A stretch of 64,000 nucleotides of DNA, taken from NCBI GenBank assembly GCA_964019335.1, contig OZ025664.1, forward strand, positions 697,524 through 761,523, in the 5' to 3' direction. Of this stretch, positions 56,418 to 64,000 are shown piece by piece (position 1 is the first letter of the stretch; every line of letters starts with the position of its first letter). A model generated the notes under the pieces. That model was given only the letters and a program-made list of their open reading frames with translations. It searched no databases and was not told the DNA's origin. Source of the stretch: Diplonema japonicum. Taxonomy: Eukaryota; Protista; Euglenozoa: Diplonemea. The translations under genes were made by a program, and so were the position numbers.

Positions 56418-58007
56418 ATGTTGCTCAAGGTTCTACTTGCAGCTGCGCTGTTTGTCTCGACGGAGGCGCACTACTACTACAGGTACGCCTTGCCCATGCA
56501 CCCGCACTGGCCAAGGCAAAGGGATTGGAACCGCCTCAAGGAGAGAATAGATGGTGGGGTCGTCATAAGGGGTGAGGACGAGTACTCTGTTGATGGGATG
56601 TACTACAATTCAAGGACTAACAACCCGCAGCCAGCTGCCATTGCGACACCGAACACCGTGTCTGAAGTCAGGTGCCTGATGCGCTTTGCTCGCAGGCATA
56701 GGATGAGGGTCTCTGTCATCAGCACTGGACACCACACCGACATGCGCTCTACTGCCGATAACTCTCTCATGATCTACATGAAGAACATGAAGGACATGTC
56801 TATCGACCACAATGCCAAGGAGCTCACTGTTGGCCCTGGCAACAACTTCCAAGACGTGCATGCGTTTGTCAAGGCGCAGACCAACAGCACCTTCGTACAG
56901 CTCACAGGTGCTGACTACACCGTAGGCCCTTTCGGGTGGGCTTTAGGTGGTGGTCACGGTATGTTGGGCAGGAAGTATGGTCTCGGGGCTGATGCAATTC
57001 GTGCTGCCACCATTGTCCTTGCTTCTGGTAGGGTGCTGAAGATCAATGACTGCAGGCACGAGGAGCTGTTCAGAGCCATCAGGGGTGGTGGTGGCAATGC
57101 TTTTGGTGTGTTGACCAGCCTCACTTTCCAACTGTTCCCTGACCCTGGTGCCGTTCATGCCTGGTGGGGTGCCTATGCTATTGGTGATGAAGTGACTGAG
57201 AAGTACTCCGCGTGGCTCGCGTCGGCTCCGGACCACGCTGGTGCCTACTGGGTCCCCAGCAATGCTGGCTCTGTTGTCATCTTCGCTTCCTGCTTCGGTG
57301 ACGACTGTACCGACGTCATCGCTGAGCTTGCCGCCATCCCCGGCTGCCTTGCTTCCAACTCTGCCTTCTGTAACTCTGCCCTTGTCTTCCCTGACTACCC
57401 CACGTACGTCAACGCTTTCCCCCAGATCAATGCAAGGGGTGCAAAGCAGTACTGGATGGCAGGTGCCACTCTGGCTGAAGACCTGGATGAGCAGCTGAAG
57501 TTGGTGAACAAATGGATTATGACGCCTGAGGATGTGCCCGTGACGAAGGCATGCTACGCCAACGGGATTGTCGGTGGTGCCAGCAAGTTCATGGATCCCC
57601 ACGGTGAAAAGACAGCCGTCGCACAGGCCATGAGGGACAGTGTGCAAGCCATCACATGCGCGCTCGTGTGGAACAACTTGACCCCTGAGCAGGAGAAGGA
57701 CCTTATCGCAACTGGTGACGTGTTTTCCGAGACAGTGCTGAAGCCTTTCAGCCCGCAGGGGTGGGTGTACTGGAACGAGGCGCAACATAACTTCCCCCAG
57801 AACGACTGGAGGGAACGTTACTGGGGCGGGCTTGACAACTACCTGAGGCTGAGGGCTGTGAAGCTGCGCTACGACCCATGGAACTTCCTCACATGCCATC
57901 ACTGCGTTGGGTGGCAGTTCGACGAGGAAGTAGACCCCGCTGTCTGCCCCGAATCGGGTTGCAGCTGTTCCAACACACCTAGGGGGGAGTGTGCTACGTA
58001 CGCCTAG
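56418..58007 (+). CDS. Secreted FAD-linked oxidase, berberine-bridge-enzyme/VAO family
   Basis: Signal peptide; ISTGHH (flavinylation His), GWALGGGHG..GRKYGLGAD, LFRAIRGGGG..FGV, C-terminal YWNE...YWG..NYLRL..VK..YDP; intronless. Confidence 0.88.
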   Translation: MLLKVLLAAALFVSTEAHYYYRYALPMHPHWPRQRDWNRLKERIDGGVVIRGEDEYSVDGMYYNSRTNNPQPAAIATPNTVSEVRCLMRFARRHRMRVSVISTGHHTDMRSTADNSLMIYMKNMKDMSIDHNAKELTVGPGNNFQDVHAFVKAQTNSTFVQLTGADYTVGPFGWALGGGHGMLGRKYGLGADAIRAATIVLASGRVLKINDCRHEELFRAIRGGGGNAFGVLTSLTFQLFPDPGAVHAWWGAYAIGDEVTEKYSAWLASAPDHAGAYWVPSNAGSVVIFASCFGDDCTDVIAELAAIPGCLASNSAFCNSALVFPDYPTYVNAFPQINARGAKQYWMAGATLAEDLDEQLKLVNKWIMTPEDVPVTKACYANGIVGGASKFMDPHGEKTAVAQAMRDSVQAITCALVWNNLTPEQEKDLIATGDVFSETVLKPFSPQGWVYWNEAQHNFPQNDWRERYWGGLDNYLRLRAVKLRYDPWNFLTCHHCVGWQFDEEVDPAVCPESGCSCSNTPRGECATYA

Positions 58008-59994
58008 GTACGGTAACGGCACAATAAGTTCTTTTGAATGTTTTCAACATGCAACTGTAAGATAATTTCTCACAGCCATTGTGTGTCTGTGTGCTCAGCT
58101 TTTTTATATTTTTTTTAAATTTAGAAGTACTTTCGAGACCAAGACTATCCGTTTGGAAAAGAATTCAACGCGAAGGTTTTTTGCCTTGCCCAACGTGAAA
58201 AGCAGTTGTTCTAGGACGGAAAAGCTTCACAAAAAGGGAACGGATGCAAAACGTTTTGGTCTCTAAATATACTTCCCCCTTTTTTCGTCAGTGAGCGCAA
58301 AAAACGCAATCCTTTTTTTTTAATATTCAGTTGTCTTTCCTTCTTTATTTTTAGACCTAGGGAAGACTGGGTTTCACATATTTTTTAATTGTGATCACCC
58401 ACGTCCCTTGCCACTCTGTAGGTTCCCTTGCTTTCGTTTCCATTTTTTCTTCCAACTCTTGGTGTGGCAGGAACTGCGCCGACTGCCACACTTGTCACCT
58501 TCAGCGGCTGCGGCAGGCAACATAATGGGTGTGCTTAGGATGCCACTCTGCCTTTTAGGAAGCTATTTGCTTTTGTAAAAGGATGTTATCTGGCGAAATT
58601 GGTGACAGCACTCTCACTTTTTACTCCTTTTACTTTCTTCAACCTCTTCCTCCTTCACTTCACTTTTTTTTTCTTTTATTGCGAGATCGAATTTGCGATA
58701 GTTTTTTTCGAATTACTTTTTTGCTCTTTTATTGATAATTCACCAGGCTCTTTTCAACGTTTACAAAAACATTTGGTTTTCTTTCTTGATCGGCTCCACT
58801 TCTGTCTATTCCAATTGCGACAGGTTTGGTATATGGCCGTATCTTGTCACCTTCCTTTTTTCTTTTTTTTCTTTAATTTTTTTTTTAATTTATGGATTTC
58901 TCCTCTCCCGTTCCTTTGTTTCCTTCTCTGTTCTCGTGATGATTGGCAAGTTGGAGGGTGCTTTTCGGAGTTGCTGACAGCTTTCCATCACTCGATTTCT
59001 TTCCCCTCCCCCCCCCACTTTTTTTTAAATGTCTCTTTCTTTTCTTCTTCTTTTAAGGCTTCCTCATCTCACGAAGCACAAATACAGACGATAAACGACA
59101 AACAAATGTTCTGCACAGTACGCTGAATAAGTGGGGACACAATACGAGTTGAGAGCTAGGGCCCGGGCTGTGTCAATGCTGAGAAGTACACCTCTGACTA
59201 GCAAACGACGAGGTGGGCAAGATTTTCCGCAACATCGTGATGCACTTCTGTTTGTTTATTGCCACCCCGGTAGCTTCCACACGGATTTCGCGGACAGGCC
59301 TTCTCCTTCGGCTTCCGCGCCACAACCCTCCGAGCCGGCAGGCTCTCAGATACGTCAGCCAAGATTCGATACGCCTCGGCAACGTCCTCGAGGCTTTGCA
59401 TAAACCCTTTAACGTGTAGCAGCTCGGCGATTCTGTCAGCAAACATTCCAGAGAGATCCGTGTGGACGTGACGACCTCACCTTTTGTGCGAGAGCCAAGG
59501 TGAGGGGGGAACTGTTCACTTTTTTCTTTTCTCTTTTGCCCTCTTACGGATATGCCATTATTTTTAGCAAAGGACAATGTGGGTAAAGCAGAACAAGAGA
59601 TGGGTCTAATAATACTAACGTAAAAGCCGAGTACCTACCTACCCCTTCATAGTTTTAACCTTTTTTTTTTTTTTTTTTTGTCTTCTCTGAGATTTTTACC
59701 GGTAAAAAGGTGGTGGCGGACTGAGTAGAGGAGGGTTTTGTTTCCCACTATTTTATTTCAGTAGCACCCCCCATGCACACTGAAACCTTATCGAATTTAT
59801 TTTGCATTCTATTCATACCAACCTGCACTCTCAATCTAATATCTCTTTTCTTCTTATTCCCCCCCTCCCCCCCCCCCCCTTTATGAACGATTTGAAAGGT
59901 AATTTTGTTTTCCCCGTGTTCAGCTGTTTTTTTATCCTTGCCCCCCTGTAGGGGGGTACAGTTTTTACACGAAGGACACCCATCTTCTCTTCGT

Positions 59995-60037
59995 CAAACC
60001 CGCAAACCCCACAAACCCGCAAACCCGCAAACCCGCA
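59995..60037 (+). repeat. Short tandem array of CAAACCCG-like units (about 5 copies)
   Basis: caaacccgcaaaccccacaaacccgcaaacccgcaaacccgca. Confidence 0.75.
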
Positions 60038-60071
60038 CGAGAAATAAAGCAATCACTTGGTTTTTTAGAAT

Positions 60072-60233
60072 TGTGGGTGTGCGTGTCTGTGTGTGTGTCT
60101 GTGCTGGTGCCTGTATGGGTCTGTGTGCTTGCATTTATCTGCGTGGTGTGTCTGTGCGCGTGCGTGGTCTGTGTGTGTCTGTGTGTGTGCGTGTGTTTGC
60201 GTCTGTGCCTGTGTGCGTGCATGTGTCTGTGCT
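60072..60233 (+). repeat. Degenerate (GT)n/(GTCT/GTGC) microsatellite
   Basis: Directly visible dinucleotide-rich tract. Confidence 0.85.
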
Positions 60234-60509
60234 TGCGGCAGCGTTGTGGAAGAGGCCGGGGAGCGACAGGAGCACCCGCAGGTCAAGGGTACAGGTGGGG
60301 CCCCGAGGGGATGAATGGTCCGCCGGGGGGCTCGCTTGGCTAGCAGTAGGGGGCACTCTGGTGGGAAGCACTTCAGTTTGGATAGGGGGGCTGATGTCGG
60401 GCTAACGCCGCAGCCGCCCCTGCCGCCTTGAACGCTGCAGCCGCCCCTGCCGCAACTGAGACCGCCGCAGCCGCCCCTGCCGCAAGCCCGACCTCCGCAG
60501 CCGACCCTG

Positions 60510-60547
60510 ACCAACGATTCTAAAGCTACAGTTTCTGTACTTTATTG
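60510..60547 (+). other. Spliced-leader (mini-exon) sequence, nt 2-39, without the SL RNA intron
   Basis: ACCAACGATTCTAAAGCTACAGTTTCTGTACTTTATTG; ends in the euglenozoan-conserved CAGTTTCTGTACTTTATTG and is near-identical to the diplonemid SL as recalled; followed by GCAGAC rather than a GT donor. Confidence 0.9.
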
Positions 60548-60620
60548 GCAGACAGGGTACACACTCCTCCGGTATCCCCTCCCCCAACACACACTTTAAA
60601 AAAAAATAAAAAAAATAAAA

Positions 60621-63600
60621 ATGGATCCAAGACGGAACGCAAGAGGAGGTGACCGCGCAAACCGCAGGGAGAAGGAACCCCGACAGGCCGCCAGGCTGCA
60701 CACGACGCCAGGGCCGACCCAACCAGACTATCTGGTTGGGCAGTATGAATCCCCACCCCCACCCCCTAGATCCCCCCACCCCCCTTTAGAAAAAAAAAAT
60801 AAAATAAAAAAATCACTAGCAGAGACCGCGGTTTTGACCGCCGCTGCTACAGCCACGGCCGCCCCAGCCGCCCTGAACGCCGCAGCCGACCCTGCCGCCC
60901 TGATCGCCGCAACTGAGACCGCCGCAGCCGCCCCTGCCGCAGCCACGACCGCCGCGACCACGACCCCTGCAGCCGACCCTGCTATTGTTGAAGAGGGAAG
61001 AAAAGAGGGAGAAAAAAAGGGGTGGGTACTGGTGTATGGTGAACACCCTCCCGGGTTGAGGACGGGCCCGGCCCCTGCCTTCCCGAAAGCCCTGCTTTCA
61101 GGAAAGTGGGAGGCCCTGTCTGGGAACTCAGGGAGGGAGACCCTCCAATACGGGTACCGGTGGGAGGGGACGAACGCCAAGGTGCGCCCCACCACGGGGA
61201 TCCCAGGGGGGCGGAGGGGTGGGTGAGGGAGGTGGCCGCCGCCGCAGGGCTCGAGGTGGTCCCCAACCAGGTACTTGTCAACAAGTACAAGTCTGGTTGT
61301 GGGATTGCCGCCCACAAGGACGACGCGAGGCTGGGACCGATTGTCCTAGTCCTCTCGTAGGGTGGTGCTCCTCCCCCCCATTTGTCCCCCCCTTTTTCAT
61401 TTTTAGAGCCCTCTCCAGAGGAACCCTCCACGGAGGTAAAAAACAGACCCTCTTCGGAGGAAAACAGAGAGAGAGGGGAAGAGGTGGCACTCCCGAGAGA
61501 GGGTAGTGTTCCTCCCCCCCATTCGTCCCCCCCTTTTTCTTTTATAGAGCCCTCTCCAGAGGGACCCTCCACGGAGGTGAAAAACAGACCCTCTTCGGAG
61601 GAAAAAAAGGCAGAGGGAGAGACAGCACGCCCGAGAGAAGGTAGTGCCCCTCCCTCTCTGCCCCCCATTTTTTCTGGACCCTCTACGGAGGTGTACACCC
61701 TGGTCCCCAAGGGCCGGGGGCTTTTTTTGAGGGTGGAAGGGAAAGAAAAAAAAAAAACAAACAAGGAGGAACCTTTTTTCTTTTCAAACAACCAGGGGGA
61801 CCCAGCACCCACCCCCACCGCCCGCCAAGGTGTGGTTGGGGCGGAGGCTGCGAGCGACGTGAGAGCACCACTGCACACCCTTGTGAGAAGACAGAAAAGA
61901 GCCCCCTGGATTGCCATGGGTGGCAGGGAACCTAAGCCAGCGCCCAAGCGGAAGAAGAACAGGAGGAGGCACAGGAGCGAAGCGGCCCTTCAGAGGCGTC
62001 GGGAGAAGAGGACCAAGGCGAGGGAGGGGGCGAGGGAGGCTGCCAGACAGGAGAAGAAAAGGCACCGTCGTGCGAGGAAAGAAGGGAGGAGGAGGGCCCG
62101 CAGAGAGGAACACGAGGCCGCCCTGGAACAGAAGCCAGATGACCCTGCAATGGGGCTGAAGCGGACCGAGGTGGGAACGCCTGGAGCCCAACCCCTGGCA
62201 CCCAGAATCCCGGCACCTGGGGCTGCAACCGGCACAAGGAGGCACCGCAGACGGACGGGACACAGCAAGGAAGGGGTGAGATGGGAGCACCTGGGGGCGT
62301 GGGCCTGGGTCGCCCTGTTCTCCCTCTTGCTGATCCCAGGGGTGAGGCAGGTGCTGGGGGCGGGCATCGGGATGGCCCCCTCCTTCCTGCATGCGGCAGT
62401 GTTGTGGAAGAGGCCGGGGAGCGACAGGAGGACCACCCGCAGGTCAAGGGTACAGGTGGGGCCCCGAGGGGATGAATGGTCCGCCGGGGAGCTCGCTTGG
62501 CTAGCGGTAGGGGGCACTCTGGTGGGAAGCACTTCAGTTTGGATAGGGGGGCTGATGTCGCTCTGGGCCATGGTGGAAGTGATGGTGGGGAAAGCTGGTG
62601 CTGGCCCGACCCAGAGATTCGGACCGGTAAAGCTGAAGAAGACAAGACGCGGATCGAGAGGTCACTACCGGCCGGTGTACTTGGGCCCGCCTAGAAGCTC
62701 AAGACGCAGAAAAAAGAAGGAGGACGCCAAGCAAGCGGCGAAGGAACGAGCTGAGACGGAGGATAAGCTCTTTCAGGCCGAACACCTGGACCCCTTTGCG
62801 GACTTGACGCTGGCAGGGGACGCGTTGCAAGGAGGTGGTGACCCTCCCCCCATGGATTTGGATGATGAGCACATGGAGGCGCAGAAGGAGGGGGAAAAAG
62901 AAGGATCAGACAAACATCAATGCCGGATGGAAGACTGCTCTTTCCGCACCAGTGTGGCAAGCTGTCTAGTTAAACACCTCAATGCGGTCCACCATCATTT
63001 TGTGAAACAAGAGCAGGCGAGGAGCATGAAGGTGAACCTCTGTGGAACGTGTGCTGCGGCGTGCTCGTCGAACCAGACGCACTGTGCACTACACAGGCAG
63101 CGGAATCTGTGGAACCCCGACAAACAACCCAGGGCCGGCAAGTCAGTGGACGAGATCATGAAGAGCTTCAAGCTGACGAGGAGATCGACGGAGAAGGACG
63201 GGAACTGCATGTTCCACGCCCTGGCCGGTTCGCTCGGGGAAGCCTACGGGGACCACACCCACATCAGGAGCGAGGTTGTAGAATGGATGAAACACCGGGA
63301 GGAGCACTATGCCCCGTTTTGCAGTGAGGGTTGGGACCGGTACTTGGAAGGGATGGGCACAGCAGCGACGTGGGGAGACCACTTGTGCCTGGCAGCCGCA
63401 GCACAAGCGTTTGGCCGCACGATACTCGTGGTTGCTGGGGGGAACAACCCAGTCCTGATGATAGGGGAGTACAACTCCGACCACGAGAAGGTGGTGGTGC
63501 TGGCGTACAACGGCAACCACTACGAGTATGCAGTCGGAGAGGAGGAGTCGATGATGATGCTCCTTGATGAGTCCCAATCGGTAGCTCTACAAAAGGCAGG

Positions 63601-64000
63601 TAAGCAACCCTCCGAGGCCCCGGGTGAGGACATCGGGGAGTGGGACATAATAGACCGTGCGATCCCTGGATACGGGAAGGCAGGGGTGTTGGACCAGATG
63701 GGGGCAAGGAACCAGCAATTCCTGTACTGTCCGGTGGCGAACTGCGCTAGGTCGAAGTGCAAAAGCACGACCCCGTTCAACTCGACAAGGGTATGGAAGT
63801 GTCACCTGGATGGGCACCTGGAGAGTGATGAGATCCCGGAGAGCGTTCTGAGGAGACTGGACCTCGAGAGGTGCCTGGTGTGCAGGGGCTGTGTGTGGAA
63901 GGGTCAGGGGTGCCACGACGAGTGCAAAAAGGCGGTGCGAAGGGAAGGGGAATACACGACCCCCCCGCCGGCCCCGACGAGGACCGAGTTACCCAGCCTG
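60621..64000 (+). CDS. Retroelement polyprotein (partial): Ala/Pro-rich N-terminus, AlkB-like domain (frameshift at about 61205-61222, TAG at 61358-61360), repeats, basic region, hydrophobic segments, C2H2 finger, OTU, zinc finger
   Basis: Manual translation: RETLQYGYRW / PNQVLVNKYKSGCGIAAHKDDARLGPIVLVLS*G; CRMEDCSFRTSVASCLVKHLNAVH (62921-62992); KDGNCMFHAL...WGDHLCL...YNGNHY (63194-63523); no stop in that frame from 61361 to 64000, first in-frame ATG at 61916. Confidence 0.75.
61361..61693 (+). repeat. In-frame tandem repeat (141-nt and 138-nt units plus a partial third) inside the retroelement ORF
   Basis: Units start at 61361, 61502 and 61640 (ggt.gtg..cctccc...gaccctc.acggaggt). Confidence 0.85.

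Follow-up and report, generated by a model that had tools for sequence, protein, structure and literature searches.

How does a retrotransposon come to carry the spliced leader (SL) of its host as its own genomic 5' end? The question is raised by the final 64 kb of a contig of Diplonema japonicum (assembly GCA_964019335.1, contig OZ025664.1, here C17, positions 697,524 to 761,523; this whole stretch of 64,000 nucleotides is called the window), in which positions 60510-60547 read ACCAACGATTCTAAAGCTACAGTTTCTGTACTTTATTG, that is, nucleotides 2-39 of the SL, shortly upstream of the open reading frame (ORF) of a retroelement. The original prediction was that this arrangement is the footprint of a trans-spliced element mRNA copied back into the genome. 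We searched the assembly (62.5 Mb in 132 contigs) and read copies one by one in stretches of the same genome, loci L001-L066. The best explanation as a whole, to which we give about an even chance of being correct, is that the window ends in a rearranged young copy of an SL-headed, chromosome-end retrotransposon of the long interspersed nuclear element (LINE) type, whose mosaic 5' end was made by template switching of the reverse transcriptase (RT).

The SL was identified by comparison with the likely SL RNA genes. These begin AACCAACG..., the same 39-mer with one extra 5' A, so that the first A is indeed absent at 60510, and in agreement with the first description the SL is followed by GCAG and not by GT, with 73 nt (60548-60620) before the ATG of the ORF at 60621. 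The 19-nt 3' half of the SL occurs once in the window against zero expected, and 217 times in the genome against zero in a reversed control. The SL is followed by GTACCCAATCTGATCC at nine genome sites, including two tandem pairs with spacings of 352 and 346 bp, and these nine are likely the true SL RNA genes, the only ones in the assembly. Those examined as loci have one common upstream flank, ending GGAGGTTA before ACCAACG, and an adjoining 5S rRNA gene, and in run X1 the commonest surroundings of the SL are exactly this upstream flank and the SL-gene intron. Within the window there is no second SL and, as had been stated, no SL intron or SL array. The window SL is of the diplonemid type, published work on D. 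papillatum giving an SL of 39 nt and an SL intron of 75 nt. The tandem SL genes lie at C15:~779,000-779,450 (L029/L030) and C59:~512,400-512,770, and in L029 the 5S rRNA gene is found ~400 bp away on the other strand.

The SL head is not a peculiarity of the window copy. A genomic SL followed by a leader starting GTCGTTCG (GTCGTTCGTGTTCTGCTGG) was found at 81 genome sites, and the normal 5' end of the family consists of the SL and then a 124-nt A-poor leader (only five A) that starts with GT and ends ...CTTACCGAAAG, with a terminal AG. Upstream flanks differ from copy to copy and include the chromosome-end repeat, A- or T-runs, pieces of 3' untranslated region (UTR), RT coding sequence and other coding sequence. 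Nucleotides 2-39 of the SL are thus the inherited first 38 nt of the element in this family, and the claim that the SL forms the genomic 5' end of the element is borne out family-wide. Every exact copy of the leader (62 of 62) follows the last G of the SL, with the normal junction TTG|GTCG, and never AG; among these 62 leaders there is no SL-less copy with AG before the leader, so the assembly holds no SL-less master able to yield SL-plus-leader RNA by trans-splicing. The leader was considered as an SL intron and rejected, since GTCGTTCG... has only GT in common with the SL-gene intron GTACCCAATC....

Aligning the 5' junctions of the genomic copies, as originally suggested, gave a common SL head and upstream flanks that were all unlike. 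Among 63 distinct SL sites outside SL genes, the SL starts at nucleotide 2 in 35, at nucleotide 3 in 9 and apparently at nucleotide 1 in 16, the last number being about what is expected if the adjacent base of an unrelated flank happens to be A. Nucleotide 2 as the commonest start fits the predicted stop of RT next to a presumed modified cap. In its DNA-encoded SL at the 5' end, its cap-proximal start and its unrelated upstream flank, the window copy corresponds to a relic-SL retrocopy. A likely retro-copied unspliced SL RNA in L004 (C2:150576), consisting of SL nucleotides 2-39 and the SL-gene intron behind a foreign T-rich upstream flank, likewise starts at nucleotide 2. In L001-L030 the sequences found after a genomic SL, which come from several unrelated element families, have G as their first base in nearly every distinct class and start with GT in most; acceptors of the form AG|G may be preferred, or the RT may follow a rule of its own at junctions.

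The full anatomy of the family was read from a longer copy on C115 (L062 and L066, minus strand). The element is a non-LTR retrotransposon (a LINE) of ~10.7 kb, with ORF1 encoding AlkB-like and OTU domains and ORF2 encoding RT followed by a putative CCHC motif and a putative restriction-like endonuclease (RLE). In the C115 copy the SL is followed by a 172-nt 5' UTR and an ORF1 of 1361 aa with a 2OG-Fe(II) oxygenase domain (AlkB-like, 1.5e-13) and an OTU protease domain; we know of no counterpart of an ORF1 with this pair of domains. The RT of this copy matches Pfam RVT_1 at 1e-16, and the nearest solved structures to the family RT are R2 proteins (5.5e-07). The best database match of the RT-RLE protein is a D. 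papillatum protein annotated SLACS (39% identity), which is the label of the match only. The motifs CHDPRC...HAQGC, RHDRV, RPADVFF, MDVVIV and KRQKY were read by eye at residues ~583-697 of the C115 ORF2, where Pfam gives only RVT_1, and Pfam detected no APE nuclease in the proteins of this copy. At the 3' end a long T-rich 3' UTR leads to ~45 A and then to the 8-mer repeat (CAAACCCG)n. The RT is of the LINE type, and the original identification of the element as a retrotransposon holds for the family by the RT and the putative RLE of the C115 copy, the RT part of the window copy lying beyond the contig end. The C115 copy also has a 26-nt tandem repeat of ~17 units in its 3' UTR, a doubled RT region (two RVT_1 matches and two identical 28-nt pieces of the kind described below, ~1.8 kb apart) and, between poly(A) and end repeat, a short piece resembling the nuclease coding region.

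At positions 60510-64000 the window contains the initial 3.5 kb of a copy of this family that is young yet defective (all window features given here lie on the plus strand). After the SL (60510-60547, identified by direct reading and genome counts), the 124-nt GT...AG leader is absent and in its place stands a 28-nt filler, GCAGACAGGGTACACACTCCTCCGGTAT (60548-60575), which genome matches trace to the RT region of the family, with one mismatch at 60566. The filler has 52 genome matches at no more than three mismatches, 43 of them exact for the source form, and its source lies ~5.2 kb downstream in the C115 copy. It overlaps by 2 nt (AT) the last 47 nt of the normal 5' UTR (60574-60620; a C-rich box and then an A-rich run), which are homologous to other copies from 60574 onwards. 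The source context reads ...GGGGAG|GCAGACAGG...GGTAT|TGC, so that there is microhomology at both junctions, G/GG with SL|G at one end and AT with GGATCCCC of the leader at the other, and the junction SL|GCAGACAGG is unique in the genome. In addition, GCAG (60548-60551) and ACAG (60552-60555) are contained in the filler.

The coding part is broken in two places. ORF1 starts at 60621 and ends after 201 codons (60621-61223), cut short by a G missing at 61205 that is present in other copies and also in other sequencing runs; its continuation in a shifted frame (61043-61360) holds the N-terminal half of the AlkB-like domain and ends in a TAG at a deletion junction; and the rest of ORF1 (61361-64000), which includes the OTU protease domain (63197-63514, 1.6e-12), stays open for 880 codons until the contig stops. 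Through the deletion, of ~270 nt at 61362, the AlkB-like domain has lost its C-terminal half and the TAG is left behind; Pfam, which gives AlkB at 1.5e-13 for the C115 copy, finds no AlkB match in the window copy. Copies with this form of deletion are also present on C24 and C64. The remainder of the window copy is 99.6% identical to the C115 copy, indicating that the window copy is young. Within the ORF1 linker region there is also a 141-nt tandem duplication (61359-61605; 106 nt aligned, 93%).

Directly 5' of the SL, the upstream flank of the window copy is a patchwork of two extra fragments of the same family. Block A (60230-60399) is a sense copy of an internal ORF1 segment, detected as repeats D3/D9 (94-98%) and 95-97% identical to ~35 family copies; its native place in the same copy is 62388-62560. 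Block B (60404-60509) comes, in sense orientation, from the Ala/Pro-repeat region of the ORF1 of a sister subfamily; it is 98-100% identical to L059 501-666 and 76% identical to the corresponding 60876-60981 of the window copy itself. It is cut at ...GACCCTG, and in L059 the sequence goes on with CCATAGTTGAAG (CCATAGTTG), not with the SL. Between the blocks stands a 4-nt filler, GGCT (60400-60403), which does not occur where either block continues at its native place. The two blocks stand in sense orientation, but their order is not the native one.

The window copy is accordingly not the plain full-length cDNA of an element mRNA that was first proposed: the normal leader has been replaced by a piece of the RT region, and more family fragments lie upstream. 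For these same reasons we read the missing GT, originally taken as the mark of a fresh trans-spliced cDNA, as a secondary rearrangement, cryptic trans-splicing being a possible alternative that is weighed below.

According to the explanation that we prefer, the SL would have entered the element lineage once, via reverse transcription of a trans-spliced RNA, and would since have been copied along with the element. New copies would be made from RNAs whose 5' end is the 5' end of the SL, with the RT finishing at nucleotide 2, next to the cap. In the window copy an R2-like RT may have made several template switches close to the 5' ends of RNAs, with the aid of 1-2 nt of microhomology: starting on a 5'-shortened element RNA, it would have jumped to the RT-region piece, from there to an SL-headed leader and then to blocks B and A; the last jump would have led from blocks B and A to target DNA composed of the end repeat and the TG-rich sequence. 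End-to-end template jumping is reportedly an established property of the R2 RT (Bibillo and Eickbush). Template switching is preferred because the pieces are in sense orientation, with 0-2 nt of homology or a small number of added bases at the joins, and because other copies behave alike. Examples of 5' stutter elsewhere are chains of partial SLs (L024, L059), an SL-GTCGTT-SL arrangement (L033) and SL heads butted onto RT coding sequence (L035). The chains, at the end of L024 (C11) and at L059 1280-1340 (C102), are made of repeated partial SLs, e.g. nucleotides 3-14 or 5-26, which directly precede either a full SL head or the end repeat and resemble repeated template-switch stutter.

Several points weigh against this explanation. 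Neither of the junctions 60509/60510 and 60547/60548 is bridged by any of the short Logan contigs listed; the AG before the 28-nt source piece fits a cryptic trans-splice junction as well as it fits microhomology; a DNA-level repair event would yield the same sequence; and the 3' end of the window copy is missing at the contig end, its target site and tail not being visible. Finally, the explanation does not account for how the exact 5' end of the SL is regained from a DNA-encoded SL, which could involve an internal promoter or another route.

On this last point we tentatively propose, as a possibility that we rate as less likely than not, that the SL is a working heritable 5' module. An internal promoter, situated in the SL or in the leader, would start element RNAs at SL nucleotide 1 and so give them an SL-type 5' end without trans-splicing, and the GT...AG leader would act as an intron of the element's own, separating a DNA-encoded SL exon from the body. 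Unspliced RNA would then give the 81 common copies, and spliced or re-trans-spliced RNA the rare variants. Two such variants were found. At four sites the SL is joined to GATCCCC, with the whole GT...AG leader gone and the cut exactly after AAAG, and at seven sites the SL is followed by TTTCTGTACTTTATTG, a 16-nt relic beginning right after the SL-internal CAG, as in the recycled cDNAs of dinoflagellates; a plain 16-nt tandem duplication would look identical to the latter. Since both forms are rare beside the 81 SL-plus-leader copies, the usual template keeps the DNA-encoded SL and leader. In the predicted fold of the canonical leader (L066 8347-8558, minus strand), the GGUCGUU donor region can pair with SL nucleotides 4-10 (AACGAUU), and the canonical SL plus leader folds no better overall than shuffled sequences (z = -0.46). 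The SL and leader of the window copy show modest folding (z = -2.6) and lack this pairing.

Re-trans-splicing after read-through, at the GCAG and ACAG that follow the SL in the window copy, is plausible from the sequence. The 3' half of the relic SL forms a pyrimidine-rich tract that has these two as its first downstream AGs; in normal copies no AG follows the SL before the end of the leader. Two runs, X3 and X8, look RNA-derived, with an SL depth more than 1000x the depth of the flank, and both contain family sequence; no informative SL junction or re-trans-spliced form appears among the matches listed for them.

The alternative that survives best, an adapted form of the original prediction which we nevertheless judge rather doubtful, is that the SL of the window copy was freshly trans-spliced at a cryptic acceptor in the RT region, GGGGAG|GCAGACAGG, giving the joint SL-GCAGACAGGGTACACACTT, and that the RT, copying a 5'-shortened element RNA, jumped once onto this SL-capped RNA 28 nt from the SL junction, ran to the cap and stopped at SL nucleotide 2. 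In each of the three source copies read, the 28-nt piece comes right after AG, one jump is needed instead of two, and the SL|GATCCCC and SL-plus-relic sites would be genome prints of spliced element RNAs elsewhere. Against this, there is no pyrimidine tract upstream of the source AG, and the SL is joined at this site in no other genomic copy. The deletion-type SL junctions bear on the same choice. Six have a traced source, and three of these are preceded by AG (the window copy, SL|GATCCCC and SL|GTAGAGCGG) whereas the other three follow TCG|G, TTG|C and TCG|T; since all six follow G, simple microhomology with the terminal G of the SL is sufficient to explain every one of them. The AG is suggestive but not decisive.

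It is also conceivable, and in our view unlikely, that the mosaic arose by repair of DNA, through a double-strand break in the leader of a canonical SL-plus-GT copy that was sealed by microhomology-mediated end joining, a short insertion being templated by this or a sister element. A single event of this kind would give the ~124-nt deletion and the 28-nt filler with its one mismatch, and would fit the 1-2 nt of microhomology at each of the two junctions. In the sister group, the kinetoplastids, microhomology-mediated joining is the principal way of joining DNA ends that has been described. It would not by itself place the out-of-order blocks A and B directly 5' of the SL, which need further events, and the template would have to be found 5.2 kb away or on another chromosome end.

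An assembly artefact, in which the junctions between block B and the SL and between the SL and the 28-nt piece are chimeras assembled in a highly repeated chromosome-end region, would be in keeping with the uniqueness of both junctions in the assembly, with the break of the contig 3.5 kb further on and with the lack of a bridging contig among the public ones listed. We regard it as very improbable, given that PacBio HiFi reads and hifiasm, named in a genome note that is very probably that of this assembly, do not normally invent 28-nt fillers with microhomology, and that like mosaics occur at many other chromosome ends.

Insertion of a SLACS/CZAR/CRE-type element into an orphan SL RNA gene, the alternative raised in the original prediction, in which the SL would be target DNA, has practically no chance of being right despite the SLACS annotation of the best named match, and was rejected on flank comparison across copies: the upstream flank of the window copy is element sequence (block B) and not the SL-gene flank ...GAGAAAGAGGTCCGGGAGGTTA, more than 60 SL-headed copies have unrelated flanks that never match the SL-gene upstream flank, a full SL minus one base and not a split SL stands 5' of the element, and the C115 copy ends in poly(A) and the 8-mer end repeat, without SL remainder or intron.

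Among known systems, the element resembles a LINE of the R2/CRE type in the way it works. SLACS, CZAR and CRE1-2 resemble the present family in their euglenozoan hosts, in being single-direction LINEs of the RLE type with RT followed by CCHC and a PD-(D/E)xK-like nuclease (here putative, from motifs read by eye), and in their association with SL sequence, but they insert into SL RNA genes, always at one fixed position, which makes the SL target DNA there, whereas here the SL is the element's own start and the flanks are unrelated sequence or chromosome-end repeat. SL-gene sequence on both sides, the trait of the CRE clade, was not found, the flanks being unlike either the SL-gene flank or the intron. 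The R2 5' junctions made by template jumping and the chimeric retrocopies of the U6/L1 type are similar to the window copy in joining sense RNA pieces with few untemplated bases and 1-3 nt of microhomology; they differ from it in that the chain deduced here from the sequence is unusually long, with three or four joins, and includes the SL.

The relic-SL retrogenes ('recycled' cDNAs) of dinoflagellates (PMC6050394, PMC5585692, PMC12014239) likewise have a DNA-encoded SL at the 5' end of a retro-copied transcript and, in some copies, a second truncated SL from an SL-internal AG, a form seen at seven sites here. Those are host genes copied by the RT of another element, in contrast to the autonomous element described here, in which the SL is inherited with a GT...AG leader in 81 copies. 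The internal promoter Pr77 of L1Tc/ingi (PMC1874656, PMC8190864), whose RNAs are unspliced and without SL, offers a possible model for a euglenozoan LINE RNA that starts at its own first base without trans-splicing, with the difference that here the first bases are the SL. The LINEs of telomere repeats (TRAS/SART in Bombyx, GilT/GilM in Giardia and Zepp in Chlorella) are comparable in their residence at chromosome ends, in one orientation and beside the terminal repeat, but belong to other LINE clades, and the repeat in the present case is an 8-mer with its C-rich strand oriented 5'->3' in the direction of the contig end. TRAS and SART use a nuclease of the APE type.

No published account of SL-headed LINEs in Euglenozoa was found in a literature search; the published genome note makes no mention of telomeres, SL or transposons, and the D. 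papillatum paper lists SLACS-like gene models without an SL-head feature. All mRNAs of Euglenozoa need the SL and its special cap, and an autonomous retrotransposon whose own sequence opens with 38 bases of the SL would represent a novel route for a mobile element to an mRNA 5' end of the host type. It would also extend the print of SL 'recycling' beyond dinoflagellates, in a family that in addition builds chromosome ends beside an unusual 8-mer repeat. The window copy itself may be seen as a natural record of how such 5' ends are made, by a stop at nucleotide 2, by template switching and possibly by use of a cryptic acceptor.

The genomic setting of the window copy differs from the insertion at the end of a polycistronic unit that had been envisaged. 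The last host gene before the patchwork, encoding a FAD-binding/BBE-type oxidoreductase (56418-58007; Pfam FAD_binding_4 9.7e-24, BBE 2.3e-08), ends ~2.5 kb before the element, which is situated in a chromosome-end patchwork starting at ~59868, and contig C17 stops at window base 64000, inside the element copy. The patchwork opens with a subterminal junction sequence (59868-59995) common to another chromosome end (C11; 93.8% identity to L024/L025). Next come a short run of the 8-mer end repeat (CAAACCCG)n, in which one unit is a variant (59990-60035, direct reading), and a module made of AGAAATAAAGC... and TG-rich sequence (60036-60238), which recurs at other chromosome ends with matches of 93-97% on C16, C43, C6 and C71. 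While (CAAACCCG)n stands directly 5' of many SL heads, in the window copy 474 nt of patchwork separate the tract at 59990-60035 from the SL.

The family is a LINE associated with the chromosome-end repeat, its copies adjoining the terminal repeat in a fixed orientation. Most copies are found no more than a few kb from a contig end and face outwards, on the minus strand at low coordinates and on the plus strand at contig ends. The 8-mer repeat terminates contigs C2, C11 and C71, and its complement starts C5 and C59; no TTAGGG runs were found in any genome locus examined. Long (CAAACCCG)n arrays occur on the plus strand at right ends (L005, L024 and L035) and as the complement at left ends (L012 and L055), so that the C-rich strand of the repeat runs 5'->3' towards the contig end, the opposite of usual telomeres. 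At several chromosome ends the modules recur in the order end repeat, AGAAATAAAGCAATCACTTGG and ~180 nt of TG-rich sequence, and in L014 (reverse complement, 1601-1820) the TG-rich module sits within the 5' leader of another element copy.

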